DNA of 64,000 nt from Eutreptiella sp. 'Long Island Sound 2002' (GCA_964036045.1 OZ038378.1:2108001-2172000); one strand, 5' to 3'. Positions 4,517 to 39,519 are shown, counted from the stretch's first letter. Notes: generated from the sequence alone by a model not told the origin. Made by a program: numbers and translations.

Positions 4517-6713
4517 GAAGGGCACGCTCTTCGGGGCAGGGGTGGTCTCTTCCTCTGGATCCCAGGAATGGGTGGGGGCTTGCAGAGCCCGTTGGTAGCT
4601 CCAGCTGCTGGCAGGCGGGCAGGGGGCCCCACAGGGGCACGGGCAGTCCTCGGAGGGAGCAACCCGGATCCCCCTTGGCCACCTCGACTGACCACGTACT
4701 CTCCATAACCCACCCAACCCATCAAGCACACCTTGGGGAGCAGACAATGGCATGGCCGAATGGGGCTAGTGGCAAGCAAGTGCTTGCACGTGACCCAGAG
4801 AAGTGGCGTTGGGCCTGGCACGGGCTGCTGCTGAGCCTTGAGCAGTGCTGCACGACAGGGATCAGAAGGCTTCAAATATGCATGCATCTCAGCACATTTA
4901 TCAGGCACAATTGTTTTCAGTACTCCCACAGAAAACCAATCTGTTGCAGCATGTCTATTTGCAGGCATTCAAGCGCAATTTGCTGCCAGTGAAACCTCCG
5001 CCGCAGGTACCTGCTTCTGTATGGAAGCAGCAGCCTTTTGAGGCCCCTTGTATGCTTCAGCCCTCCGCTTCCCATGGAAAGCGTCAGTGCGACTAAAACA
5101 GTGACTAAAATAGCCGCCATCTCTTTGGCAGTGGCAGTTTTCACTGCCCTTTTAACAGGGAAAAGCTTTCCATCCTTTGTCCTGCAACACAAGCATACTA
5201 CAATGCCACAACATAGAATGCATGGCACAAGCCAATTTAGGCTCCACACAGTCCACCTGGACAGTGACCCCGCAGTGTGCAACGGAAGTGTAGGGGATGG
5301 CATGATTGCGACATTCAAATGTAGCAACCAAAAAACAACAACAATGACACCCCCTCCCCCCACCCCCACCCTCCTCACCCGAACAACAGGGGTTTTAAAG
5401 TCTAGAAGTGTAGCGCAGGTGTAGCCCTCAGAGGGTCATTTGCACTTTGCTGCTCCTCTTCCTACGTCCCTCCACCTCAGCGCTACCTCCACTGCCAGTC
5501 CCCTGGACTCCGTTCTCACATGTGCCCCTTACCTCCGCTACTGTCCTTGGGAGGCTGGGTGTCTCTTCTTGTCCTGCCCTTTGAGCTTCCCCTTCGCACA
5601 CCACTCACTGCACGCCTCAAACAGGGGCTGCAAATTGCAACCGCATTTCTCTAACTCTCAGAGTTGAATGGGGAATTCAAATTCGCCAAAGAAAAAAGCC
5701 GGGAAACTCTGACCTCCCCCTCAAACTGGGGGGTTGTTGAGGTCTCAGAGGTGGGCCTAAGGCTGGTGCTATGCTGGGAGATGGTATCCCTTGACCGGAC
5801 CCTCGAGATACAAACAGGAAGTGCTGACCCCCCATCCCCATCCCCGGGAGGCAGAGGAAACTGGCAATGGGGGTGTTGGTGATGGTGAGTCTGCAAGATT
5901 TGCATGCACACTGCGTTGGCCAAGCGCATGGCTTGTGACCACCCAAGCCACTAACTGTCGTTGGGGGGGTGGGGGGGAATTGGGCACTCACTCTTTCCCC
6001 GCCAGCCGAGGCAGATTAAAGTGAAAGAGTGAGTGGGTTCCGGTGGCAGAGGGCTCAGAACTCGCTTCCCCTCGCGTAATATGCGTACTCTGGAGATCTT
6101 GGCTCCTTCTGTGAGGGTGAGGGCTACACCCCTGCGGCGCCTGCAGCGTGCGGCAGGAATAATTCGGACAGCAAACAAGACAGGCAATGCACTGTCATTG
6201 TATTCACTACTTTTTCACACTCCACCCCTCTATGTTGTGCAACACGTCACCAAATTCGCAAGACAAGACAAGGCAATGTCTTTGGTTGCTCAGTAAAGAT
6301 CCTGCATTCGGAGAGAGACGGTGTCAACAGATCAATGTCCCCCCAACCCCCAACCCCGACCCCCCACCCACTCAGTGGGTTTTGTATAGGCAGGTACTCC
6401 AAATGGTCATAGAATGGTGTTTTTTCCTTCTTGTTGCAAGTTCCACTGTTTCTGCAGTTTAAGAGGATTATTTCTGCCCTGTGGCACCTGCGGTGCGCCC
6501 TGCGGCGCGCAGGTGTAGCCCTCTGTGGCCACATGCTGGCGAGGTTCAAGCCAAACTGAGTTGTCCCCTGCCACCCCACGGCAAGAACAGGGAGAGCCAC
6601 GTTGCAGACCCCCAGTGGGGAGTGTGGGGGGTCGCAGTTGCAGCCTTGATTTAACTGGTGCCCGCCATCGCCTGGCCACTCCACTCCCACTCTTCCCGGC
6701 CACATTCGCACAG

Positions 6714-7982
6714 GATTGGTTGGCAGCTTTCGTCGCCCTCACCAGCCCCGACAGCGCGTTCCCCCCAGAGTCACGGTCTTGCTCCTCCATCGCGAGCCTG
6801 TACCACTTCGTGCAGGGGGACAAGGGCGAGTGGCTGCAGCACCTGGCGGCATCCGCTGGCCCGGCTCCAGCGTTGTCCCCAAAGGGCAGCACCAACCGGC
6901 ACAGCAACGCGACGAGGTCCGCGACCTGTGTGGCCCCGGCCCCGGGCCCGGCCCCAGTCCTGCCTCCCACCCCGGGAGCCGGGGCCGGGCCGGGGACCAG
7001 GACTGCCACCGCGTCCAGCGCAACGCCCGCAGCCACAGTGCATGGGGCTCATGCACCCGCCGTCACCCTGTCAGCCCTGAGGGGGGGCGCCGCGGGCGCC
7101 CCCGCCCCAGCTCCGTCCCCCGCGTTGTCCTCCGGGGCAGCGACACCCGGCATGGCCGGCCCCGCGGCGTCCGGCGCCCCCGCGGGCCAGGGCCAGGGCG
7201 GGGGCGGTGGCGCGGCGGCGGGGCTGCTGCGGGAGCTATCGGAGCCGATGCCCGGGACCGGGCCGTTGGTGGACGACCCCCTCGCGCGCTCATGGTCGTG
7301 GTCCGAGGGCCCCGTCTCCGTCGACGAGTTCGTGGCCCGGATGTTCCGCCGGAGCAACACCTTCATCTACGGCAGCGGCCGCCTCACGGACAGCGTGGCG
7401 GCCCTGCTCAGCAAGGCCCTCCACGCGACGCACACGGTCAGCCGGAAGCCGCTCGCGCAGCAGGCCGCGTGCATGCGGCAGCCGGTGCGGGAGTGGCTCG
7501 TGCAGCTCGGGCGGCCGCCGGCAGAGTCCGGGATGCAGATCTCGTTGACGGCGCCGCTGGACGCGCTGCAGGACGACCAGGAGTTCTGGCTGGGCCCCAG
7601 GGCGGCTGCGGGTGCGGAGGCCTCGTTTGTGTTGACGGGGTCGGAGGTGAAGCAGTTGGCAGACGGGGCCGTGCTGAGTTACCTGGAGCCTCTGATGCCG
7701 CCGGGCAGCATTCTGAAGGCCGGGTACGCGGAGCAGGACCACACGGCCACGCAGCTGCTCGTGCTCTGCGGGGACATCTACGTGACGTTCGACTCGGAGT
7801 TCCGGCCGCAAAGGAGGGCGCCGAGGCCCGTGTGCTGCTGCTCCGTCCCTGGCATCAACTTCGCGTACTCCCCGGCAGACGCGACAGAGTTCATGGAGCA
7901 CGGGCTGATCAACCGGCCAAAGGCGTTGAGGCGGATGTGCAGCATCTGGGCCCATGTCTTTCTGTGCATGCAGAAGCGTGAG
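6714..7982 (+). CDS. Gene A large exon (423 aa): end of N-terminal domain, Ala/Pro/Gly linker, start of PARG-like macrodomain region
   Basis: CACAG acceptor at 6713 and GAG|GTGTGA donor just before the ORF stop. Very GC-rich codons. Joins the next exon as QKRE-VTYPCLNAIGCGAF. Confidence 0.9.
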
Positions 7983-10094
7983 GTGTGAGTTGTGCTCCCC
8001 CAGCCCTGTCTTCAGCCACCGGGCCACGTTGGCTCAGCCGCCATAGCACATGACGCTGGGTGTTGTAGTTCGCCCTGTAGCAGCCACGTCCGCCCCTTGC
8101 CATGGCCCCATGCGCTGCACCAACTTGGACTGCGTGCGTTTGTCGAAGCGTCTGCACGGGTTGACCATGATCGGGATGGGTGTCATGATCGAGCCGGTGA
8201 CCAAAGGGGGCGCAAGGGAAGCGAGCAAGAAGTGGTCCTGGCCCCCGGCGAACACCTTTTTGCGCCCGGACTACCCATCGCTATTAGACACATCCCTGCC
8301 TGGCCCTGACCATGTAGCCTGCCTCTCCCTCTTCCCTCTCCCTCTCTCTCTCCTCTCTTCTGTTTCTCTGTCTCTCTCCCCTTTCTCTCTCTTCTCTCTC
8401 CCCCTCCTCTCTCTGGCTCTCTCACTTGCTCATTAAGATCATGCCTCAAACCACCCCCGTATGGTGCCCGTAGGGTGTGTATACTCCCTCTTTGGGGTGC
8501 ACCATGCACCGTGCAGGCGCATCTTTTGCCCCTCCCCCCCAACCATCTATTGTATAGTGGCCTGTGCAGCGACATGCTGCCTTGCAGTCTTCTGTCTCTC
8601 TCTCCCTCACACACACACACACACGCACAGGGCCACGGCAGGGAGAAAAATCAATGGCATCAAGAGGTGCCGGGACAATACCCAGAGAACTGCCAAAGGC
8701 ATGAACTGATTGCGTGAAAAAACCACCCCCACGGCGGGGCAATGGGCAATTGGCACACACACACACACTCCCTCTCTCTCCCTCTCTCTCAACCCCTTCA
8801 CACGGACAAGGCAGGAGAAGTCAGTGCTCCCAGCACCACAGATCACTCAGTGCCTCTTCCTCACCCCAATGGCGGCTGGAACTGTGGCGCAGTCAATGGC
8901 AGATCATTCGTCACCTGCCCCAAGGAGGTGCAACGACATCTGTTGCGCTGCAGCAATGCAGCGAACGACGCTAGGCGGTGCAGCGGCAGGCACGGGCAAG
9001 CGGCCAATGGAGCAGGCGCCAAGAGGGCGGTGGGCCGCCAGCGCTCACCCTCACGCACTCCCACAGGCAGTGTGGCAATCTGGGAAGCACCGGACACCAA
9101 GTGCCCCGGGAGAGGAGGAGCTCGCCGCTCTGCGCAGCACTTTGTGGCGGACTTGTACATGGATCCGACGATGGTGGATCACCCCACGCAGGGGCTCGGT
9201 GAGCAGGCGTAGTGGTGTTCTCTCCCAGCGGGGGCCAGGCATCGCCGCAAGCCAGAGGTCAGGAAAAGCTGCAGCGTGTGGCTTTGTGAGGTCCACCATA
9301 GATCCCAACGTGTGGCGTGCGCAGCCATAGGTCGAGGAGTACGGAGCAGCAGGGGGCATATGGGCCACCCACAGGGCGCGCCCATGAGACGCACGACTGC
9401 GCAGCGCCCACTGGCCGGTCGCATTTCACCGGGGAACACGCCGAACGGCCAAGAGGAGGCGGCAGAAGGCACCACTTTGGTCCGCCCTCAGCAGGCGGAC
9501 AGCAGACTGCGAGCGGTTGCGGTCTGGGGCACCCAGAGAGCCCCACACAACAGGCGACAAGTGCTAGCGCCAGAGGCTGGCACAATGTGTCATGGGTGCG
9601 CGGTGACCGAGGTCGTGTAATCGCCCACTCTGGGAGGCTGTTGCCAGGGTAGGCCAGATCCGGGGACTCGAGCCCTTCTGCCAGACCCAGTATGGCCTAT
9701 GATCCCGTATGCGTGCTGACCCCACTGGCCCATGCGGGTGATACCCGCTCACCCACGCACAATCGGACCCTATGGAACTCGTAGACCCCGGCAGGGCTGG
9801 CCTCCACAGGGCCTTCGAACACCGAGCACATGGTTATCTGCAGGTGGTGGGATTGTAGGAATGTTGAACCTCACAGTTTGGGCACGAGTGAATGGCGGCC
9901 TTGGCACAAAAACACCATCTGCTGCAGGGCGCGGTCGGGGTGCATGGCCTGTATGTAGTCTTGCTGTCGTGCTGAAATGGAGGAAAGGACACCATGGGCG
10001 CAATCACCAAACATTGCTGCAGTGCGGACAGAGCCGTAGATGTGCTGTATGTTAGCGAACACTGTGAATTTGCTTCAAATGATTGGGCGTCACG

Positions 10095-10096
<2 letters not shown>

Positions 10097-10135
<39 letters not shown>
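10097..10135. repeat. (CT)n microsatellite serving as the polypyrimidine tract
   Basis: Ends about 30 nt upstream of the 10167 acceptor AG. Confidence 0.9.
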
Positions 10136-10139
<4 letters not shown>

Positions 10140-10167
10140 CCTCCCCGGCCATGTCACAACCGTTCAG

Positions 10168-10380
10168 GTCACATATCCATGTCTGAATGCAATCGGCTGT
10201 GGGGCCTTCAAAGGGTCACAGGCTGGCGTCCCGGAACTATGGGCCCAGGCCTTGTTTGACGTCCTGAGTGCCTGGGACTACGGCTTCAAGACCGTCATCC
10301 TGTGCCTCCCCACGTTCGGGGACGACAATGTCACTGCGTTCAAGACGGTCTTCCACCGCAAAACATCGGAGAACGGAGAG
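10168..10380 (+). CDS. Gene A exon containing the AIGCGAFKG loop (71 aa)
   Basis: TTCAG acceptor downstream of a (CT)n tract and GAG|GTCGAT donor. GCGAF matches the ADP-ribose-binding loop of PARG-type macrodomains. Confidence 0.88.
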
Positions 10381-11337
10381 GTCGATGGGTGCCCCCCCTC
10401 GCAGGGGAGGGCAGAGTTCCATGCAACAACCCAGCACCAGGAGGGCGGTGGTGGGCTGGGGTTCCCAGAAGCCGCCCCCCGCACCCCCCACCCCACACAC
10501 ACCCGCCCCAGACCCCGTTAAATGATTGGACAAATTTTTCCTCTGCGACTCCGGCACAAATTTTCGTTCTTCAGCCTGCACCTCTGTCTGGTACCTCTGT
10601 CAGTTCATGATAATGGGGGATGCCATTGCATGCAGGCCACAGCTCAGTGGGCAAAATACAGGGGGGAGGGGGGCACGGGTCAGAGGCCACAGAAACTTTT
10701 TGTACCTAAAAGCGGCGTCAACCTTCCCTCCTCACTGATGAATTTCCTTTTTTTCCTACGAAAAATTGTTCTCTGGGTGGATGGATCGGATGTGGGCCCC
10801 AAACCCCCCCCCCCCCCAAGAAAGTCGTGGCCGGATTGCATGTCATGTCCAAAGCTGCGGTCTTTTTTGCCAGATTTCCGGAAAAGGCCTGAGACCGCCA
10901 TTATCCAACATGGCATGGCAGCTGTTGGTGACTGGGTGAATGCATTTGGCCGTTTGTCAGTTGACAATAATAATTAGCCTCTGAAATTTCAGATGAGGAG
11001 CAGGGGGGGGGGGGCGGGGGAGCAGGCGGGCGCCCCCCCTCCCTCGATTCCCAAAGCCAGGCTCAAGATCAGGTGTGCTGGCGGTTCGCACCCCGGTAGC
11101 CGTCACCAGAGCGGAGGCAGTGAAGGGACTCTCTCAAGCGGAGCCGGGTGCGGGGAGCCCAACCCTCGACAAGGTCTGGGGCCATGTGATGCGCGCGCAT
11201 GCACGGCAGCACAGGTCTCAGCCCTCTGGTGGCCACCCCTGAAAGGGGTGGGCGTCAGGTGTGGGGGAAATGGACCAAAAGGAATGGGCTGAGCCCTCGG
11301 TCCTGAAGCTCTCAGTGGAACGAGATCACGTGGGTCA

Positions 11338-11396
11338 GGGGCCATAGCGCAGCCCGCCTGACCAGGGGATCCCGGGTTTGAGTCCCGGAGCGGGGC
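11338..11396 (+). pseudogene. tRNA-derived degenerate sequence
   Basis: tRNA-like start GGGGCCATAGCGCAG and T-arm CCGGG-TTTGAGT-CCCGG. D-arm is truncated and the acceptor stem is unpaired. Confidence 0.4.
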
Positions 11397-12332
11397 ACGG
11401 GTATCACCTCTTCGCCATCTTCGGCGCTCTCCGAGGGGACGCCGCTGAGTCGCATGGGACTACCGGCGGTTGGTTGGTGCCGGAGAATGCCTGGGTATTC
11501 GACCTCAAACGCTGTCCGCGGGCCCTCAGGGCCCAGGCACTGCACATGGACCGGGAGGCTGTGGCAGGTTCCGGTCTGCGCCAGAGTGTCGACCCCCCCC
11601 CCACCCCCCGTTCAGAGGGACGTGGTGGTGGGTCGGGTGTGGCCTGCTTGCCCGGGCCAAGTGGGCCTTTGATCGTTTTGTTGGGGAAAGTGAAAGGGAC
11701 TCAGCCCCCCCCCCCCCCCCCCCGAAGCCATCCCCCCCCCCTCCCCACAATAAAACAGTGACGGCAGAACGTGGACAGTTGATGGAGCAGAGTACAGGTG
11801 AGCACAGGCGCCGCGATCTGAACCCACGGTAGATATCCTGATCCTGCTTTGATGGGGTGCAAAGGCTCTGGCGGGACTGAGCACCTTCAGTTCGAGAACC
11901 CTGAAGCCCTGCTGTGGTGCCGCTCCATGCTTTGAATGTGTCGTGCAGCCCTTCCCCGCACAGGGGTTGGGGTGGTGATGTTGTGGCAGCACAGCCAGGG
12001 TGGGATGCGAAAGGACGTTGTCAGCGGATTGCATCGCCAAGGGCCGCCCTGGCCCTATCGAAAGGCAACAAATCACAGTTTGCAGTGCAACCAGGGCGCT
12101 ACGCAGGGCATAGGGCGACAGCGTCGCACATTCCAAGAAAGTTATGCCGGAACGTTCTACAGTGTTGCATGCAACCCCCGACAACAACAACAACAACACC
12201 AAGGGGTATGATGCCAAGCAACCACTCTGTACATCCCCATGGGTGCTAGAGTACTCGCATGGCCACCAAATGATGACCCGAGCCCATAAAAGAGCCCGTA
12301 GAAGAATGATGATCTACACCCAAAAGCCAAAT

Positions 12333-13232
12333 CACCTCGAAGAGAGGATTATAGATCAAGTGTGGGCGCGGACGCCATACAGCCCCGCTTTTTGGGGGTC
12401 GTTCGCGTAGCATACCCCAAGGCATGATATTGGATGTCTAACCTCTTGTAAAATCATTATTTTTCTCGACAAATGATTCCCCAATGGATTTTTTTTTTGA
12501 GCCCTCTATCCCCCTGAAACCGGATACCACATTTTAGGGGGGTGGGGATCCTCCTGACAGGGCTAAGCAGACCCTAGTGGTGAGTGCCATACTTCGCTTG
12601 AGCGAACCGGCGGGGGGTAATCGCCGAGACCACCACCGGGGGCCTGCAGCGCGGGCGCCACACCACGGGCTGGGGTCTGAGCGAAGGTTAATGCCGTATG
12701 GATCCTTAATGTCTTGACCACCACAACCCGCCGCCATGGAGAAACAGAAATGGTGGGGTCAAGACAGCGGCTTGGCGGACCTTCATGAGAAGAAGGAGAA
12801 GACCGACACTGCATCATGCGGTGAAGGATAAACGGGTGACTGTCCTGGGCCCCGTAAAGCAACCAGAGATGGACTTTATGTCACACAGGGGGGTGGGGAG
12901 TCAAACGTTTGCGCTTTGAAGGATTTGAACCAGGGCCGGGTAAAACAGAATGGCTCGTTGATGAATCTGTACCGACGGTTGCCGGCCAGGATACCAACCA
13001 GCGCCAGGCAGGCCGTCCGGCGAGTGTTTTACCGCTCGACCACTGGTTGCTGCATACAGATCAGTCCCCACTGCTTGTACCTGTTGGCTGCCACCAAAAA
13101 AGCCAAATTGTGTTTTTCCGCCTGCCTGTTTGCCTGCCTGCTTGCCTGACTGACTGCCTGACTGACTGCTGGACTGACTGACTGATTGGCTGACTGTCAG
13201 CCTAACTGACTGATGCTAGTCACTTCGAGGTG
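12333..13232. mobile_element. CACCTCGAAG inverted-repeat element (MITE-like)
   Basis: CACCTCGAAG at 12333 and CTTCGAGGTG at 13223. The left ~150 bp is shared with copies at 22475, 31336 and 32126. Confidence 0.6.
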
Positions 13233-13838
13233 CCTTGCCTAAGGCAATAGAATTTCCATGCTAGCAATGAGGGAAGGGAAGGACCAGCAAAGCAAGGGGA
13301 CAAGGTGGTGACAGGCCAATGTAACCCCCCCCCCCCCCGGCTCCCCAAAACGGGGCCCGATTTCCCCGACTCACCCCAATTTGTTAGCCCGATTCAGTGG
13401 GTTGCAGGATCGAACACGAGAAGTCGGCATTTTACCCGGGCGGGCGAGAGGCGCAGCATACACGCCGCGCCCCCAGCCATGCCAAGCAAGGCAAACACTG
13501 GTGCCAGAACATCCCGGCACATAAGGCTGGGCACCTTCCTCAGTCACCAGCAATGACACCCCTACCCGATTTCCGGAGGGCAAGGGGAACAAGAGCACAG
13601 ACAAGGCAGAACAATGTAAGGGCGGTCACGCTTTGCACTGAAGCGCGAAGCAAGTCGTGAGGCAGGTGTGGCTGGGGCCAAAGGTGGCGGTCCACATCCA
13701 ACAAATTGCAGCCCCGCTCTCGCCTTGCGATCCTCTGCTTTCCCCCCACGACATTCCGCATCCCACTGCAAACTGAAATGCCCTCCAAGGGTTGGGTTGG
13801 GATGGGGACGTGCCCCTGCACTGCCTTGTGCCCTCTAG

Positions 13839-13971
13839 ACCCTCCGGAGCCCGGTGCTGCTTGTGGAGGACAAGAGCATGGTGGCCATGGTGGATTTCAT
13901 TGCCCGCAGCAGTGAGCGTGCGGGGCTGCTCAACCCCTCGGACTGGCAGGCCCTGCGCCATGGCTTTGTAG
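13839..13971 (+). CDS. Gene A exon TLRSPVLLVEDKSMVAMVDFIARSSERAGLLNPSDWQALRHGFV(G)
   Basis: CTCTAG acceptor (phase 0) and G|GTGTGG donor (phase 1). Not in the ORF track; read manually. Phase matches the next exon. Confidence 0.88.
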
Positions 13972-14961
13972 GTGTGGAAGGCGCGCGGGCAGCCGGGCTC
14001 ACACTTGCATTGCCTCTTGTCCTTTGAATCCCCTGACCCCCTCATCCCCATGGCTGGGCACAAGCAGCCGGACGGTCAACAGGATGCCCCAATGTTCCTC
14101 CTTCAGCTTTGATTTCCTCAACACATTCTGAGCACTCTGAGGACATCAGTGGTGCAAAAAACGGGGGCGGGGATGAGGGGTCAGATCAGTAGCCCCCCCT
14201 CTCGTGGGTGTATCATGTACCTTTTTGCTTCATCTGAACCCCAATGAGGTGCAATGACCCCCTATGACCCCCCAATACCCCCCCCCCCCCCATGACTCCA
14301 CCATGACCCCCTAGTGACCCAGTGAGGGAAGGGGGTGAATGTCCGGGGGAAACTGCGATTTAGCAGCAGATACCCCTGCCTAATGTGTCCTAATCCTTAA
14401 AAACTAGGGTATTAATTATGTCCCAATTCAGAAACCTCCCTTTGTTTCATCCAAGGTTGCTTGCTTAAACAGAGTTTGAGAAACCCATTGCTGGATGTTT
14501 GCTGATGTGCACCCATTTTTTTGGCCACATTTTTGGGTTATTTTTTTTTCCAATGTAGACCCAATTGACAAGAAAATTTAGTTCAGGGTAAACAACATAC
14601 GTGGAGAAAGCAACGGTGGCTGACGGGCAAACACTCATGTCGGTGCAATCAAATATGTCCCAACCCTTAAAACTTGGCATTAAATTGCGTCCCAATCTTC
14701 AGACACAATGAATGTTTTTATAATTTCTAGGGTGGCTTTTTTTTTCACCCCCCTCCCAAGTAGGCGGACTGAGAAAGCAGCTGGCATTTTACCAGGCCTA
14801 GCGGGCAACAGGCTATCTAGTGAGTGTACCATGGGACCGAGGATAGACCGGGGTAGGACTAGCCAAAAGGGCAAGCACGGGCACAATGCTGCGGGTGCCG
14901 GATTCAAGGCGAGTCTTGTGTGGAAGCATCGCCACCGATGAGGTGTCCTAGAGCACCACAT

Positions 14962-15797
14962 GGGGGAGCGTTAATGCGCCGGGCACGCGCTAGGCATCTT
15001 TTTGGGCCATTTTTGATATAGGGTCCTAATCCACGCTTTTTGCAAGGCCCATTTCCGGTTTGGGATATGGACCGGCCCCTTTCCAGTTGGGGATATGGAG
15101 TGGCCCATTTCCGGTTGGAGATATGGACTGGCCCCTGCTTTTACTTTCATTGGAAGAAAGAATGGAATTTTTGGCCCTGCTTTTACTTTCATTAGAAGGA
15201 AGAATGGAATTTTGACGGCCTAGCAACAATCGTACAATGATGTGCATGGGTGGTATAGGGCATGCATTGAGCATTTGTTTGGACAGTTGTGGCACATCTA
15301 GTGTGGCGGGCTTGACAAGTTGCACCACTCCATGCGTGTTTTGTTGCATTTCATGCAATTTTGCATTCAGAGGCAGGTCCGTCACCCTCGTTATGGACCA
15401 TGGGACCATGTCCCGCCTCATGTGTGGACTGGTAAACGCAATACGGCCGCCATGCAAGATGATGGAGTGGATGAGGCAGATGTGTGTGCCTTGTGTTGTC
15501 GGAAGCGCTCCACCATCACTGCTTGTGGTGAGTGCAAGGAGCATTATTGTGATGAATGTATTGATGCCCACATTTGTGGGGAACAAATTGTTTATTAGCC
15601 AATACATGAGTAATACACATTGATGTTGAAATTCTCCGTTTCACTTTTCAGTTTCAGTTTTTTGTTTTGTAGGGAAGGTTTGCGGTCCACTTTGGTCGAC
15701 TTGGGGGGCTCCTCTAGGGGAGGGTAAATCCAGGGTGACAGGCAGGATCGTTAATACAAAAGTAGCGCGCCGGGCGTGCAGCGGGCAAACACCCCCC
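14962..15797 (+). mobile_element. Second PIF/Harbinger-like derivative retaining the transposase C-terminus and Zn-finger tail (stops, frameshift)
   Basis: Homologous to 27172..27852 (GGAAGAA..AATGG...ACAATGA.GTGCA.GGGTGGTAT; Cys-rich tail). Same end motifs. Internal 28-bp and 43-bp tandem duplications at 15046-15215. Confidence 0.75.
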
Positions 15798-17020
15798 CCC
15801 CCCCTTGGCCCTGTGCCACAAGGGTGTTCAGGTTCCTTCCTCGGGTCAAGCGGACTGCAGCTACATCCGGGGGCTGGGTGAGCAGGTCACGGGGTTGAGG
15901 CAGAGCGCGGCGGGGATGGGCCTGAGTGGTAGCATGCGGCTGGGAGCGCACCAGAAGCGGTACATGGGGCCTCCTTTGGTTGAGTCTGCCTGGGGAAGGG
16001 GGGGGGGGGCTCTGCTGGCAGAGAGGATGACTCAGCTCTGCGTGGCACATAATCCAATGGGCCAACACTGCCACACACTACTCAGCGTGGATCTTGGCAC
16101 TGTATATGCGGGTTGAGGGAGGAGCTAGGGTGGGAAGAGTACGTACGTGCCCCAAAACAGCGCCCAGGACACTGTGGAACAGTCCGGGTGCATTCAGCCC
16201 CCTCTCTGTGCGTTTGGCCTGTCACAGCACAGTCCAGGGGCATTCTGCACAGTCAGGGTGCATTGCGGTTAGAGGGTAACTGATGGCAGTTGCAGGGTAA
16301 TTCGGCCCGTCCCCGGGGGCGATCCTGAATGCAAAGCAAACCACTGCGAAAGTTCTCAACGACCACAGCCATTGCAGGTTTCTTTTGAATGGGTACTGCA
16401 CCCTCTCGTGGTGCCCTCCGCGAGCCACTAGCTCATGAGCCCTTCCCTGCAGGTCAGCTGCCGCGTGTGTGTGCCACGTGCCGTGCTCCAATATTTCTTG
16501 TGCCCAGGCGTTCTGTTCACACCCTACCTGGAGAGGCGCCGCCTGGTCCACTACAATACATGTGACGTCATGCCGACAACCCTTCTCAGCTTTGCATGCC
16601 CCGTGTTTTTCTTGCGACTGATGTGGGCTCATGTGAAGTCCCCCCCTTTAGTCTCTCTCTCTCTCATAGGAAGGCCTCACCCTGGTCCAACCGCCGTCAC
16701 AGTGGCCCTGCAAACCGACCGCCCCCTCCCTCCCCATGTGACTCAAGTTGTGAGATACTTCCCCTCCAGGGCGGACCTTAGGGGCGGCACCGTGACGTCG
16801 CGCACTCCTGATGACCAGCACTCTCGAATACGACAACCGCATGACCCCTGCACAGCACCCCTGTGCTCACTGTTTTCCTTCCTTTTTGCCGTGCGTGTGG
16901 TGACCCTGGTGCTCTCGGCTCTGAGTCGCCCTGAGTAGCCCCCGCCTACGGGGCGCACCTTTGCCCTCCGTGGGATCCCGGGTGCTGCACGCTGTGGTAC
17001 GGCGTCCTCATGCACCACAG

Positions 17021-17181
17021 GCATGTACTGGGACGGGGGTCACATTGCACTGGAGGAGATCCTCGCGATGCAGACCACGCTGCTGCTGCAGCACGTGGGG
17101 CTCAACCCACAGCTGTACGCGGACCCGGGGCGGAGAGTCGGCATGGCGCTGCCCGAGCCGCTGCGGAGTTTATGTGGATGA
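17021..17181 (+). CDS. Gene A terminal exon (G)MYWDGGHIALEEILAMQTTLLLQHVGLNPQLY...CG-stop
   Basis: CCACAG acceptor in phase 1 and TGA at 17179-17181. GC-rich codons. Not in the ORF track; read manually. Confidence 0.88.
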
Positions 17182-23032: not shown

Positions 23033-26000
23033 GTGCCATGGGAAACACAGGGGTTGGCGCCGCAAACAGGCTCCCTAGCACTCTGTCGGGTGCGCCCGGG
23101 GCTGGTTGTGGTGGTGATTGCGGCGGTCTCAGCAACAGTGGGCTTCTCCCTAGGATGGGCCCGGGAACTGGTCCCTCTATGCGGCAGGAGGGTGTCTATA
23201 CGCCCACAGCCCACAAAGGCGCCCCGCGGCGAGGTGACGGCCCTGAGTCCCTCTCGGGGGGGGGGGGGGGATCACCCCCGAGCGGTGACAGGGGGCCCCA
23301 ATCCGGGGTGGGGTGGTGGCGGGATGGCATGGAACCCAGCCGCCGCGGCGCTGCGGCTGTCCCTCGCGCTGCGCGTGGCCAGGGGTGTGTCAAGGAGCCC
23401 CCCCCCTCCCCCCCCCGAGGGAGAGACGGCCGCCGGCAGGCCCCACGCCGTGCCGGTGGACTGGTGGGGCCGGGTGTGGGAAAATGACCCCGCCCGCCCG
23501 CCCCCCCCCCCCCCCGACCCCGACCCCTCGGCAACTTGGCGGGAGGTGGCCGTCGAGGTACACGCCCTCCTCCCCCGGCTCACCGACGTCTGGTGGGCCG
23601 CCCTGCCGGAGCCGGGGCAGGTCGGGGCCACCGCTCGGTGGCCAGACATCCTCCGCCGCGTTCCCCCTGCCTTCCGGCGCCCAGCTTGGGCCGGTGACCT
23701 CCGCCGACCACCTGGCCTCGGTGCAGCGTGCCCGTGTGGCCCAGGAGCGACGGTTGACCTGCAGCCATGCGATGCTGCCCCTCCTCTGACCCCTCCCCTT
23801 GCGCCCTCTGACCGCCTGCAGTTGAGTTCGTGGGTGGGCCGGGCACTCCTCCCCATTCCACCCCCCCCCCCCCCCCCCGCTGGGGCGGCCGTGGCTCAGC
23901 CCCTTCCCCCCCGCTTGATGGGATGGCGATGGGACCTCCCTCTCCTCCCGCTGCTGCGCTGCGGGGACGTGCACCCCCACCCGGGGCCATTGCGCGTGGC
24001 GCAGGCCAACCTCACGTCCCTCCGCATGCACTGGCACACGGTCGCCGAGTGGCTGGTGGACGTGGTGCTGCTCTCTGAGACCCGCCTCATGGCGGTCGCG
24101 CAGCGGGTGATGCGCGCCCAAGCCGGGGCCTCGGGGTGGCAAGCATTCCTGGGCGCCCCCCGGGAATCCTTGGGGGGGGGGGGCATCTGGGATGCAACGG
24201 CTGGGGGGAGGGGATCAGGGTGCCCCAGGGCATTACCGCGAGACACCTCCTCCCCCGCAAAGGGGCGCCCCGGAACGAGGTAGACTCCCTCACCCGGGCC
24301 CTGTGGCACTCCATCAGATGGTGCCATGTCCTGGTGGGTCTGGGGCGGGGATCGGAATCCCTGCATGTCCACGCGGCCTACGGCGTCTCGTCTCAACCGG
24401 CCCTCAACCGGGCCTTCTGGAACCAGGCCACACAGTACGTGGCGCGCCACGGGCAGCCCCCTAGCTGGCGGGGGGGGCGCCTAAACTTCAACCTCGTCCA
24501 CCTGCTAGGGCCCCCCCCATCCGTCCTGGCTCCCACCTGGTGCGCCGGCTGGTGGACGCGGACCTTGAACTGGCATCCGCCTTCGGGCGGGACCCCCTCT
24601 GCTCGTACCAGGGCCCGGGGGGTATGCGCCCCTCGCGCATCGATGGGTTGCTGGTTGACACGCGGCCGGCGGCGCTGCTCCACGCAGCGGAACTGCTCCC
24701 GCGCGGGGCCATCCCTGGCCACATCTTGGTGCGATACGACTTGCACCTGAAGGGTGCGTCTCAGCGGGTGTTGAAGTTCATCCGCCCCAAGCCCGTTGAG
24801 CTGGCGCCGCGGGAGGAACATGAGAGCCAGAGCGCTGCCCACGCCCGCTGCACCCCGCTCGGCGTGGCGCCCATGTCGTGCGCCATCAGCTCCAATCAGT
24901 GGAGGACCTCCCGGAGGGGGCCCTGGGCCGCCTGGATGTGCGCCAAGGGGCAGGTGAGCAGCCCTCCGGTGTCCCTGCACTGCTTTGGGCAGAGGCGCAC
25001 CTCAGGTAGCAGCTGGTCGGTCTCCCTGCCCCGGGGTAGGTGCGGAGGGGCCAGCGGCAAGGCGGCCCCCGCCGGGAGGGAGTCTGGGGCAACGTCCGGG
25101 CAGGCCAGGGCGAGGAGGGTTTCCTCTGCCGCCGTGGTCCAAAACGCCCAAGCGTGGTCCACGTCACCCGTGGATAGGGCTGCTCACCAGCCGGCCTCCA
25201 GGGGGTCAAGGAGGCGATGCACGAGGAGGAGCCCGCCACCTTGACAAATTCCACGCTCTGGGCCCAGAGTATGCCGGCCTGGAACCAGGCGGCACGCACG
25301 ACCGATTGGTGCCGCCGGAGTCGCTGCGCCGCCTCCGCACGACGCTGGTGGGTAAGGCTTGGGCTACGTTGCGGGCGGAGGACCAAGGCCGCCTGCGCGC
25401 CTGGGGCGCCTGGTTGGAGGAGGCCCGGATCTCCGACCGGGGGGCGGTGTACCAGTGGCTCAAGGATGAGTACTACGCCCCGCCGGTCACCTTCCTCTCC
25501 AGGCCGGATGGCATGGGCACGGCCGACCTGGCGGAGATGGCTGGCCTCTCGCAGGACACCTGGCGCCCGGTAAACCGCAAGTATGCGGCGGACGCCAAGC
25601 CGGATCCCACGTCCTTCCTCCGCCGGTATGGGCACCATGTCCGGCGAGTCCCCATGATTCCCTCGCGGCTAGAATGCCCCCGCCTACGCAAGGGGCTCTC
25701 CCGCATGAAGCCCTCGGCCCTGGGGCTGGACGGGTGGAGCCTGGCCGACCTCCGCTCCCTCCCAGACAAGCTGCTGCGCTGGCTGGCAGACCTCTTGCGG
25801 GAGGTAGAGTGTCTGCGCAGGTGGCCGACCCGCCTGGCCGAGGGCTACACTGCCCTCATCCCCAAGGAAGGCCCGCCGGGACCCCTGAACACCCGCCCGC
25901 TCAGGGTCCTGTCCATGGTCTACAGGCTGTGGGCGGGCGTGCGCTTGGCGGATGCCATTGCGTGGCAGCAGTCCTGGGCCCACGCGGCGGCCTTTGGCTT

Positions 26001-38200: not shown

Positions 38201-38665
38201 ACCCCCACACCCTCATCGTTATTTTTACTGGCACTCTTGCAGGAAGTTGGCCTTGCACGCCATCGTGCATTTTCACACGTGATTGCAAATGCACCCATGC
38301 ATGCGCCCCGGGGGGGGGGACTCCGCGGGTCCTAGGACGCCAACTACCCCCCCCCCCCCCCTAGGGGCCTCCGGCCGACAGTTAGTTGTCAAAGGTATGA
38401 GCCCAAGGAGCCAACGGGCGCCGAAGGCGCCCCGGCGCCGAAGGCGCCCAACGGGGTTATGTAGCCATCTTGCCCACTTGTGGGCCTTTTTCTGATTCTG
38501 CCCCCCGCTCTGAGGCGGTGGGGATCCCCTAGGCGGCAGGGGTTATGTAGCCACCTTGCCCACAAGTGGGCCAATTCTGATTCTGCCCCCCAACTCTATA
38601 GCGGTGGGGATCCCCGAGACGACAGGGGTGACGTAGCCAGTTTGCCCACAGGTGGGCCAATTCTG

Positions 38666-39519
38666 TCCGGTGCTATTGAGGAAACCGGGACAATCTTTGA
38701 ATCCACGCTTCGTTGCGTGGTGCATCAGGGTGCCCCCCCGGCGTAGGTTTTGAGTTCTGATTTTGTTCCCTTTGTTGGGGACCCCCGAGAATGCAGGGGT
38801 GATGTAGCATTTCCGCCCTCTTCTGGGCCCCAACCGTCCGGTGCTATTGAGGAAACCGGGACAATCTTTGAATCCACGCTTCGTTGCGTGGTGCATCAGG
38901 GTGCCCCCCCGGCGTAGGTTTTGAGTTCTGATTTTGTTCCCTTTGTTGGGGACCCCCGAGAATGCAGGGGTGATGTAGCATTTCCGCCCTCTTCTGGGCC
39001 CCAACCGTCCGGTGCTATTGAGGAAACCGGGACAATCTTTGAATCCACGCTTCGTTGCGTGGTGCATCAGGGTGCCCCCCCGGCGTAGGTTTTGAGTTCT
39101 GATTTTGTTCCCTTTGTTGGGGACCCCCGAGAATGCAGGGGTGATGTAGCATTTCCGCCCTCTTCTGGGCCCCAACCGTCCGGTGCTATTGAGGAAACCG
39201 GGACAATCTTTGAATCCACGCTTCGTTGCGTGGTGCATCAGGGTGCCCCCCCGGCGTAGGTTTTGAGTTCTGATTTTGTTCCCTTTGTTGGGGACCCCCG
39301 AGAATGCAGGGGTGATGTAGCATTTCCGCCCTCTTCTGGGCCCCAACCGTCCGGTGCTATTGAGGAAACCGGGACAATCTTTGAATCCACGCTTCGTTGC
39401 GTGGTGCATCAGGGTGCCCCCCCGGCGTAGGTTTTGAGTTCTGATTTTGTTCCCTTTGTTGGGGACCCCCGAGAATGCAGGGGTGATGTAGCATTTCCGC
39501 CCTCTTTTGGGCCCCAACC
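38666..39519. repeat. Tandem array of five essentially identical 171-bp units
   Basis: TCCGGTGCTATTGAGG recurs at 38666, 38837, 39008, 39179 and 39350. I noticed only one substitution, in the last unit. Confidence 0.95.

Follow-up and report, generated by a model that had tools for sequence, protein, structure and literature searches.

A spliced four-exon gene of Eutreptiella and its Euglenozoan family: a macrodomain of rearranged topology and a probable (ADP-ribosyl)hydrolase

The locus

The window analysed here is a stretch of 64,000 nucleotides from Eutreptiella sp. 'Long Island Sound 2002' (GCA_964036045.1, OZ038378.1:2108001-2172000), and on its plus strand, at 7152/7248-17181, lies a genuine spliced gene of four exons. 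The best explanation overall, and one that we consider quite probable, is that this gene belongs to a family found in Euglenozoa and encodes one rearranged macrodomain that would act as an (ADP-ribosyl)hydrolase. The four exons, with GT-AG borders and phases that agree, can be read from the DNA:

7152-7982, plus strand: exon 1; the start is ATG 7152 or ATG 7248, and the donor GAG/GTGTGAGT lies at 7982/7983, phase 0.
7983-10167, plus strand: intron 1, GT..AG, with a (CT)n tract before the acceptor.
10168-10380, plus strand: exon 2; acceptor ttcag/ after the (CT)n tract, donor GAG/GTCGAT, phase 0.
10381-13838, plus strand: intron 2, GT..AG; 12323-13322 is packed with very high-copy repeats.
13839-13971, plus strand: exon 3; acceptor tctag/, donor GTAG/GTGTGG, phase 1.
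13972-17020, plus strand: intron 3, GT..AG, phase 1; it interrupts the Gly codon of the conserved GFVGMYWDGGH.
17021-17181, plus strand: exon 4; acceptor cacag/, stop codon TGA at 17179-17181.

Exon 1 opens with a variable N-terminal region, followed by a conserved LGRP..E.G block, the strand GD-IYVTFD and the strand CSVPGINFAY (SVPGIN codons at 7842-7859). A strand and the diphosphate-binding loop LNAIGCGAF (GCGAF codons at 10195-10209) are encoded by exon 2, together with a helix, the strand VILCLPTFGDDN and a final helix. Exon 3 gives the first part of a relocated module, with the strand VLLVED, the helix SMVAMVDFIA and the strand GLLNPSD (LNPSD codons at 13929-13943), and exon 4 adds the catalytic-loop-like MYWDGGHIALEE, the helix ILAMQTTLLLQH and a C-terminal tail, with the Glu-Glu codons at 17053-17058. 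The codon split over the exon 3/4 joint, G/GC, becomes the Gly of GFVGMYWDGGH. The peptides cited in a preliminary description of the stretch were found in their places: YVTFDSEF at 7779, PVCCCSVPGIN at 7827, VTYPCLNAIGCGAFKG at 10168, GFKTVILCL at 10282, AFKTVF at 10336, VLLVEDKSMV at 13854, AGLLNPSD at 13920 and MYWDGGHIALEEILAMQTTL at 17023. No second copy of any exon is present within the 64-kb window. The (CT)n tract of intron 1 is a microsatellite at 10097-10140, 25-70 bases 5' of the exon 2 acceptor, which is the position of a polypyrimidine tract.

Evidence for the gene model

The gene model goes beyond chance, since exon 1 matches 43 proteins (E <= 1e-3 in an exhaustive HMMER search, the window's own database entry P0001 included), and the full-length matches, which are 381-737 amino acids long and 29-39% identical to exon 1, run colinearly through exons 2, 3 and 4. 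The closest relative, P0003, sits on a 1.39-Mb ENA contig, L121, where the equivalents of the exons are 54-80% identical in protein sequence. The exon 1/2 joint is continuous DNA in L121, with window positions 7982 and 10168 corresponding to the neighbouring bases 10423/10424, and the exon 3/4 joint is likewise continuous, so that the GFVGMYWDGGH motif lies in a single open reading frame (ORF) containing ...GLLNPSDWQALRHGFMGMYWDGGHIALEE..., or in its fuller form ...GLLNPSDWQALRHGFMGMYWDGGHIALEEILAMQTTLLLQH.... Because both of these joints are unbroken in L121, the borders of introns 1 and 3 are set to the base. The position of intron 2 is common to the window and L121 (10623-11162 there).

RNA was consulted by aligning the contigs of four sequencing runs, two estuary metatranscriptomes among them, on window 7923-13922. 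One metatranscriptome contig of 151 nucleotides is identical to the window over 10258-10378, after which 30 letters differ from intron 2, and a second one matches from 13837 to past 13922, with 5 differing letters upstream. The 2-letter offset at the borders of intron 2 is an alignment ambiguity (AG/AG), as AG is present at both borders. RNA contigs that break at both borders fit the use of the donor and the acceptor of intron 2. Run X3 is genomic DNA, and it covers exons and introns equally. The four-exon splicing proposed in the preliminary description is borne out by the splice sites, the phases, the colinear homologs, the joints in L121 and the RNA breaks at the borders of intron 2.

Automated annotation had been expected to miss exons 3 and 4, and it does so in both of the calls that we checked, the only database entries for this gene and for its closest relative. 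P0001 is a prokaryote-style call of window 6525-7988 (plus strand), the ORF of exon 1, and P0003 is the call of L121 10001-10660; each ends at the first in-frame intron stop and is without the C-terminal catalytic-loop module. As annotated, the two resemble catalytically dead fragments, as the exons with the predicted catalytic loop are left out.

The introns differ between the two genomes. Introns 1 and 3 of the window (7983-10167 and 13972-17020) are missing in L121, where the corresponding joints are at 10414-10424 and 11296-11304, and L121 has an intron at 8969-10181 that splits its counterpart of exon 1 and is missing from the window gene. Differing intron positions, with intron 2 alone shared, point to a fast gain or loss of introns between related euglenid genomes.

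Within intron 2, the blocks 12323-12522, 12723-12922 and 13123-13322 have word depths from tens of thousands to more than 100,000 in X3, where single-copy sequence has about 7-9, and they are also found at high depth in both estuary metatranscriptomes; they are very high-copy, transcribed repeats. In intron 3, a 536-base stretch at 15224-15736 is 74% identical to L121 20131-20657, about 9 kb downstream of the ortholog; it overlaps the ORFs 15237-15623 (plus strand) and 15026-15607 (minus strand), and could be either a repeat present in both genomes or a small gene that has been conserved.

A family across Euglenozoa

Judged by its sequences the family spans Euglenozoa, with members from euglenids, diplonemids and Bodo. 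Translated transcripts gave the members from Euglena gracilis, Ploeotia vitrea, Entosiphon sulcatum, Diplonema japonicum, Namystynia and Flectonema, and those from Diplonema papillatum and Bodo saltans are derived from genomes. In their sources they are named "hypothetical", or "WWE domain-containing" in the case of Bodo. The family could be recovered by the exhaustive HMMER search alone: with exon 1 a word-index protein search gave no match and a scan of metagenome contigs confirmed no relative, an Atlas feature search gave no usable match, and searches of PDB sequences with exons 1 and 2 gave chance matches only. No single exon of the window matches Pfam, and exons 3 and 4, as well as the L121 ORF covering them, match neither Pfam nor NCBIfam.

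The translated exons of the window were searched and aligned as four separate rows, unjoined, and the family alignment comprises 24 sequences with a mean identity of about 38%. The window exons retain 42 of the 44 columns that are conserved at >=90%; of the two that differ, one has Val for Ala and the other falls on the split Gly codon. In the numbering of the E. gracilis homolog P0005, the invariant residues are G76, G158, S182, G185, C251, G252, F254, A326, L339, N340, P341, D343, G350, G353, H360, A362, E364 and E365. The N, D, G, H, A, E and E of the last module and the G-C-G-x-F of the diphosphate loop are thus the same in 24/24 homologs, and every one of them is present in the window; the Glu-Glu pair, described earlier as intact, is indeed so. 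The block of exons 3-4 is the best conserved part of the family.

A WWE domain is found at the start of 13 of the 24 relatives (best E 2.7e-12). The profile made from it also matches the WWE domains of RNF146, DTX1 and HUWE1, and in this respect these relatives are like RNF146, Deltex and HUWE1, which belong to poly(ADP-ribose) signalling. The euglenid members that we checked are without a WWE domain, and we could find no described case of a WWE domain fused to a Larg1-type macrodomain.

Order of the motifs in comparison with microbial PARG

The motifs of the family follow in the order SGPVYVxFD, CSIPGINFAYS, LCAIGCGAF and SLPTFGDDN, and then PVxLxED-SMV..A, GxLNPSD and GMYWDGGHIALEE-LAxQTTLLLQH. 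For comparison, bacterial loci that encode GAWGCGVF were collected and 58 ORFs of 250-330 amino acids aligned; four of these, scanned as a control, reach 157-181 bits on PF10021. The bacterial ORFs have the order that the preliminary description gave for microbial PARG, i.e. VLNFASAKNPGGGFLxGAxAQEE, YSPxVPVFR, the ..APNAG strand and LVLGAWGCGVF. Its central claim, that the diphosphate-loop half (GCGAF, exon 2) comes first in the Eutreptiella protein and LNPSD...GGHIALEE (exons 3-4) last, agrees with the profiles, with a re-ordered alignment and with the model of a homolog, and homologs that share this order exist in euglenids, diplonemids and Bodo.

With hhalign, the region from the helix before GCGAF to the end falls on PARG columns 204-293 (probability 95%, E 2e-8), and the region of exons 3-4 on PARG columns 79-147, the strand-helix-LNFAS-GGG..QEE part, with a score of 19.9 and P 0.018, pairing GHiALEE with GAqAQEE and LNPSD with LNFAS. 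When the family blocks are re-ordered, with the last one first, a single alignment of 211 columns spans PARG columns 79-293 (E 1.3e-8), against 93 columns in the native order; on a doubled template the local alignment crosses the junction only partly (128 columns). We regard the sequence evidence for the swapped order as solid for the GCGAF half and as suggestive for the half encoded by exons 3-4. Of the expectation that each half by itself would resemble PARG, the first part stood, and for the catalytic half the resemblance stays suggestive, with no match in Pfam or NCBIfam.

Of the families with solved structures, microbial-type PARG (PF10021 PARG_cat_microb, TIGR02452; T. curvata 3SIG, D. 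radiodurans 5ZDC) is the closest in sequence. TIGR02452 matches exon 2 only, with E 0.024 and 14.2 bits (the cut-off is 50) at profile positions 211-255 of 266, and PF10021 has no Pfam match to any exon or to any of the 24 homologs. Searched against PDB sequences, a profile of the family core reaches only the T. curvata and D. radiodurans PARGs, weakly (E 0.5-1), and neither Larg1 nor MavL is reached in this HMMER search; the full family alignment finds WWE domains only.

The features that define a PARG are GGG-x6-8-QEE and a G[A/V][F/Y] loop (PMC7050489). GCGAF, which is invariant in the family and aligns to GAWGCGVF, agrees with the latter. The GGG-x(6-8)-QEE motif is not found N-terminal to the diphosphate loop, and the corresponding loop of the family, G-MYWD-GG-HIA-LEE, follows GCGAF in the chain and keeps the Glu-Glu pair. 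The likeness to microbial PARG includes the strand LN-x-[AS]-[SD], similar to LNFAS, the loop G-x-x-A-x-E-E, similar to GAxAQEE, and an N-terminal extension that probably corresponds. Unlike microbial PARG, the family has its modules swapped, a Leu in place of the Gln and a loop about 5 residues longer, and it does not reach the curated thresholds.

Predicted structure

The AlphaFold 2 model was made for P0005 (421 amino acids) with the 24-sequence family alignment, and it stands in for the protein of the window. Its mean predicted local distance difference test score (pLDDT) is 88.9 and its predicted template modelling score (pTM) 0.88, with the C-terminal module mostly above 90 in pLDDT. A Foldseek search of the PDB with this model has Larg1/Lpg0081 as its best match (7w3s/7wbk, E 1e-9, 394 columns), followed by MavL and the Drosophila proteins CG2909 and CG3568 (DUF4804) at E 2e-6 to 2e-4; bacterial PARGs come at E about 0.05, with clean alignments over about 165 columns. 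In VIA-align the model and Larg1 superpose with Z 26.9 and a root-mean-square deviation of 3.0 Å over 287 residues, colinearly from model residue 65 to 402, and Z is 20.1 for CG3568, 19.5 for CG2909 and 18.5 for MavL. The T. curvata PARG reaches Z 10.7 and aligns to model residues 58-302 only, stopping before the last module. The ESM Atlas gives the same division, as MavL and DUF4804 clusters span residues 74-396 and TIGR02452/PF10021 clusters 56-305 only. Folded by itself the C-terminal module has a pLDDT of 64.6 and a pTM of 0.41, a poor result that is in keeping with a module built into one domain.

On the P0005 model b1-b2-a1-a2 follow after b3..a5, the noncanonical arrangement, and PARG and canonical macrodomains align only as far as about residue 305. 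The earlier reading of a permuted domain is in this way supported on the homolog model, which is matched over its whole length by Larg1, MavL and DUF4804 and by PARG in part, and the modelling supports the view that the Euglenozoan protein is a single macrodomain of the Larg1/MavL-type noncanonical topology. The circular permutation probably concerns the macrodomain core and not a whole PARG protein, with the catalytic-loop module moved to the end; since the alignment with the T. curvata PARG begins at model residue 58, the N-terminal extension probably keeps its place.

Relation to the known noncanonical macrodomains

The permuted order itself is already published for Larg1, MavL and DUF4804, and the novelty is thus lower than the preliminary description had assumed. 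Kubori et al. (2022) described Lpg0081 as a "noncanonical macrodomain", in which the canonical b1-b2-a1-a2 module is C-terminal after b3...a5 and the alignment with PARG and MacroD is piecewise; with HHpred they noted a resemblance to D. radiodurans PARG across 84 residues, found Lpg0081 "unlikely to be a PARG" as it is without the Glu-Glu, and proposed convergence (PMC9191684). Zhang et al. (2024) defined the MavL/DUF4804/Larg1 class as arginine-specific and noted "connectivity differences" from the T. curvata PARG (PMC10951314). In the MavL class the diphosphate loop [V/I/L]xGxGxGx[F/W/Y] comes first and the catalytic loop WDxx[S/A]xPGN[D/E][F/Y][F/W/Y] second (PMC10951314).

The best structural match, Larg1 of Legionella pneumophila (PDB 7W3S, 7WBK), is an ADP-ribosylarginine hydrolase. 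It has the C-terminal b1-b2-a1-a2 in common with the family, as well as a Phe that ends the diphosphate loop and an acidic residue on the following helix, which in the family would likewise touch the distal ribose. It differs in having no sequence similarity by HMMER and no Glu-Glu, in using D372/N379/E380/E387, in an insertion domain of about 70 residues, and in being an effector that a bacterium secretes, with Arg-ADP-ribosylated ADP/ATP translocases as its targets.

MavL and the DUF4804 proteins (PF24754 MavL, PF16062 MavL-like; Drosophila CG2909, CG3568) are alike in fold and loop order (Z 18-20), and also in an acidic pair 11-12 residues after a conserved Gly. Counting residues, without superposition, MavL D332/D333 and the E364/E365 of the family share the same offset from this Gly (G321 and G353, respectively), and D333 of MavL binds the 2''-OH (PMC10951314). 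The diphosphate loop of the family, L-x-A-I-G-C-G-A-F, fits 4 of the 5 fixed positions of the MavL-class motif, the first Gly being Ala. The catalytic motif of the class is absent from the family, where the loop is LNPSD-x7-G-x-x-GMYWDGGH with no Asn followed by Asp/Glu after the Gly. Unlike the MavL class, the family has a 7-residue helical insert after LNPSD, and WWE fusions in many of its Euglenozoan members. Pfam MavL matches weakly in 9 of the 24 members (best 16 bits against a cut-off of 27, profile positions 162-220, i.e. the diphosphate loop only), and PF16062 (DUF4804) has no match in the 24.

Literature searches on circularly permuted macrodomains, DUF4804, Larg1 and MavL-like proteins gave no description of such a family in Euglenozoa. 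What is new is a Euglenozoan family, without Pfam annotation, on an already known topology, and also, as read from the alignment, an invariant PARG-like G-x-x-A-x-E-E loop that replaces the MavL motif. The WWE domain of 13 of the 24 relatives, absent from the window gene, is new as well.

Putative function and alternative explanations

Exons 1-2 supply the main part of the domain, SVPGIN and GCGAF included, and exons 3-4 the relocated module, which carries LNPSD and GGHIALEE. A canonical macrodomain or a microbial PARG begins with this module (strand, helix, strand, catalytic loop, helix); here it is placed C-terminally, after the strand of the diphosphate loop. The GCGAF loop and the C-terminal loop would take up ADP-ribose between them, and the distal ribose would be held or activated by the invariant Glu-Glu, placed where the last long helix begins, a role modelled on Glu114/Glu115 of the T. 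curvata PARG and Asp332/Asp333 of MavL. The protein is probably an (ADP-ribosyl)hydrolase. As to the substrate, the PARG-like loop and the WWE fusions of the relatives point to poly(ADP-ribose); the closest structures solved so far, all of them hydrolases of arginine mono-ADP-ribose, favour the latter.

Several observations weigh against this explanation. The RNA support consists of two metatranscriptome contigs of 151 nucleotides at a depth of 2-4, and the same libraries hold contigs that match introns; the protein that was modelled is a homolog, 29-63% identical per exon to the window gene. The PARG score of the relocated module (P 0.018) was equalled by 3 of 100 column shuffles, a reversed profile scoring 13.7, and the catalytic half alone is without a Pfam or NCBIfam match. 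Its loop is G-x5-GG-x3-LEE instead of GGG-x6-8-QEE. The acidic pair of MavL has the same spacing, so the Glu-Glu alone is no proof of PARG-type chemistry, and the closest structures, Larg1 and MavL, are without Glu-Glu and hydrolyse Arg-ADP-ribose, not poly(ADP-ribose). The window gene also has no WWE domain, as a hidden Markov model of the relatives' WWE found none in a six-frame translation of the whole 64-kb window.

Some of these points would fit a plain arginine-specific mono-ADP-ribosyl hydrolase of the MavL/Larg1/DUF4804 class, in which the PARG-like last loop would be convergent or coincidental and which would have no poly(ADP-ribose) activity. We find this possible but rather unlikely. 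All the best structural matches are Arg-specific, and although 9 of 24 members match Pfam MavL weakly, these matches are confined to the diphosphate loop and stay at 16 bits against a cut-off of 27. Asp332/Asp333 of MavL are at +11/+12 from the conserved Gly just as Glu364/Glu365 are, but the motif with the Asn and Asp that contact arginine and ribose in MavL is missing, and the family has LNPSD..GMYWDGGH. The relocated module resembles PARG with a P of only about 0.02; the WWE fusions, on the other hand, are a better fit to poly(ADP-ribose) signalling.

A non-catalytic ADP-ribose reader, or a pseudo-enzyme on a rearranged macrodomain, is in our view improbable. Many macrodomains bind their ligand only (PMC7050489), and the loop departs from the signatures of PARG and MavL alike, but an adjacent Glu pair, a His, an Asn and an Asp that are invariant across euglenids, diplonemids and kinetoplastids exceed the usual needs of binding, and those relatives that bear a WWE domain already have a reader. 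We find it very hard to believe in a normally ordered domain with a degenerate catalytic loop in exon 1 (e.g. VLSYLEPLMPPGSILKAGYAEQD or DEFVARMFRRSN) and with exons 3-4 as a tail or a separate peptide: by eye VLSYLEPLMPPGS-x7-EQD overlays VLNFASAKNPGGG-x7-QEE at the right spacing, but the exon 1 stretch has no conserved Gly or Glu, the block of exons 3-4 is the most conserved one and has a pLDDT >90 within the whole-protein homolog model, and the Larg1 alignment runs through it. The candidate loop VLSYLEPLMPPGSILKAGYAEQD (7670-7745) was rejected, as this part varies among the homologs and has gaps in their alignment.

The rearranged macrodomain had earlier been described in two effectors of Legionella and in DUF4804 proteins, for which two fly enzymes stand as examples. 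The four rearranged enzymes that have been tested are all arginine-specific and without the catalytic pair of PARG, and the first report took the rearrangement for convergence. The protist family would extend the range of the rearranged fold to a whole eukaryotic phylum, would offer a candidate for a second and structurally distinct enzyme that degrades poly(ADP-ribose), and would supply sequences that connect the rearranged class with microbial PARG. A bolder idea, which we put forward tentatively and with some doubt, is that the family is a PARG on the Larg1/MavL scaffold, with the Glu-Glu catalytic pair of PARG retained and a PAR-binding WWE domain as its guide in many lineages. It would then be a living intermediate, showing that the noncanonical macrodomains of Legionella and DUF4804 arose from microbial-type PARG by permutation, and protist genes of this kind would be the likely source of the Legionella effectors. 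An origin by permutation from microbial-type PARG would, if true, contradict the convergence proposed by Kubori et al.

Other features of the window

Two more ORFs were noted in the window. At 23033-24283 there is an ORF of 416 amino acids with no Pfam match. The other, on the minus strand at 38543-39517, is 324 amino acids long and has Pfam ankyrin repeats and a zf-4CXXC_R1 zinc finger (E 2e-7); it probably belongs to another gene, as one of its exons.

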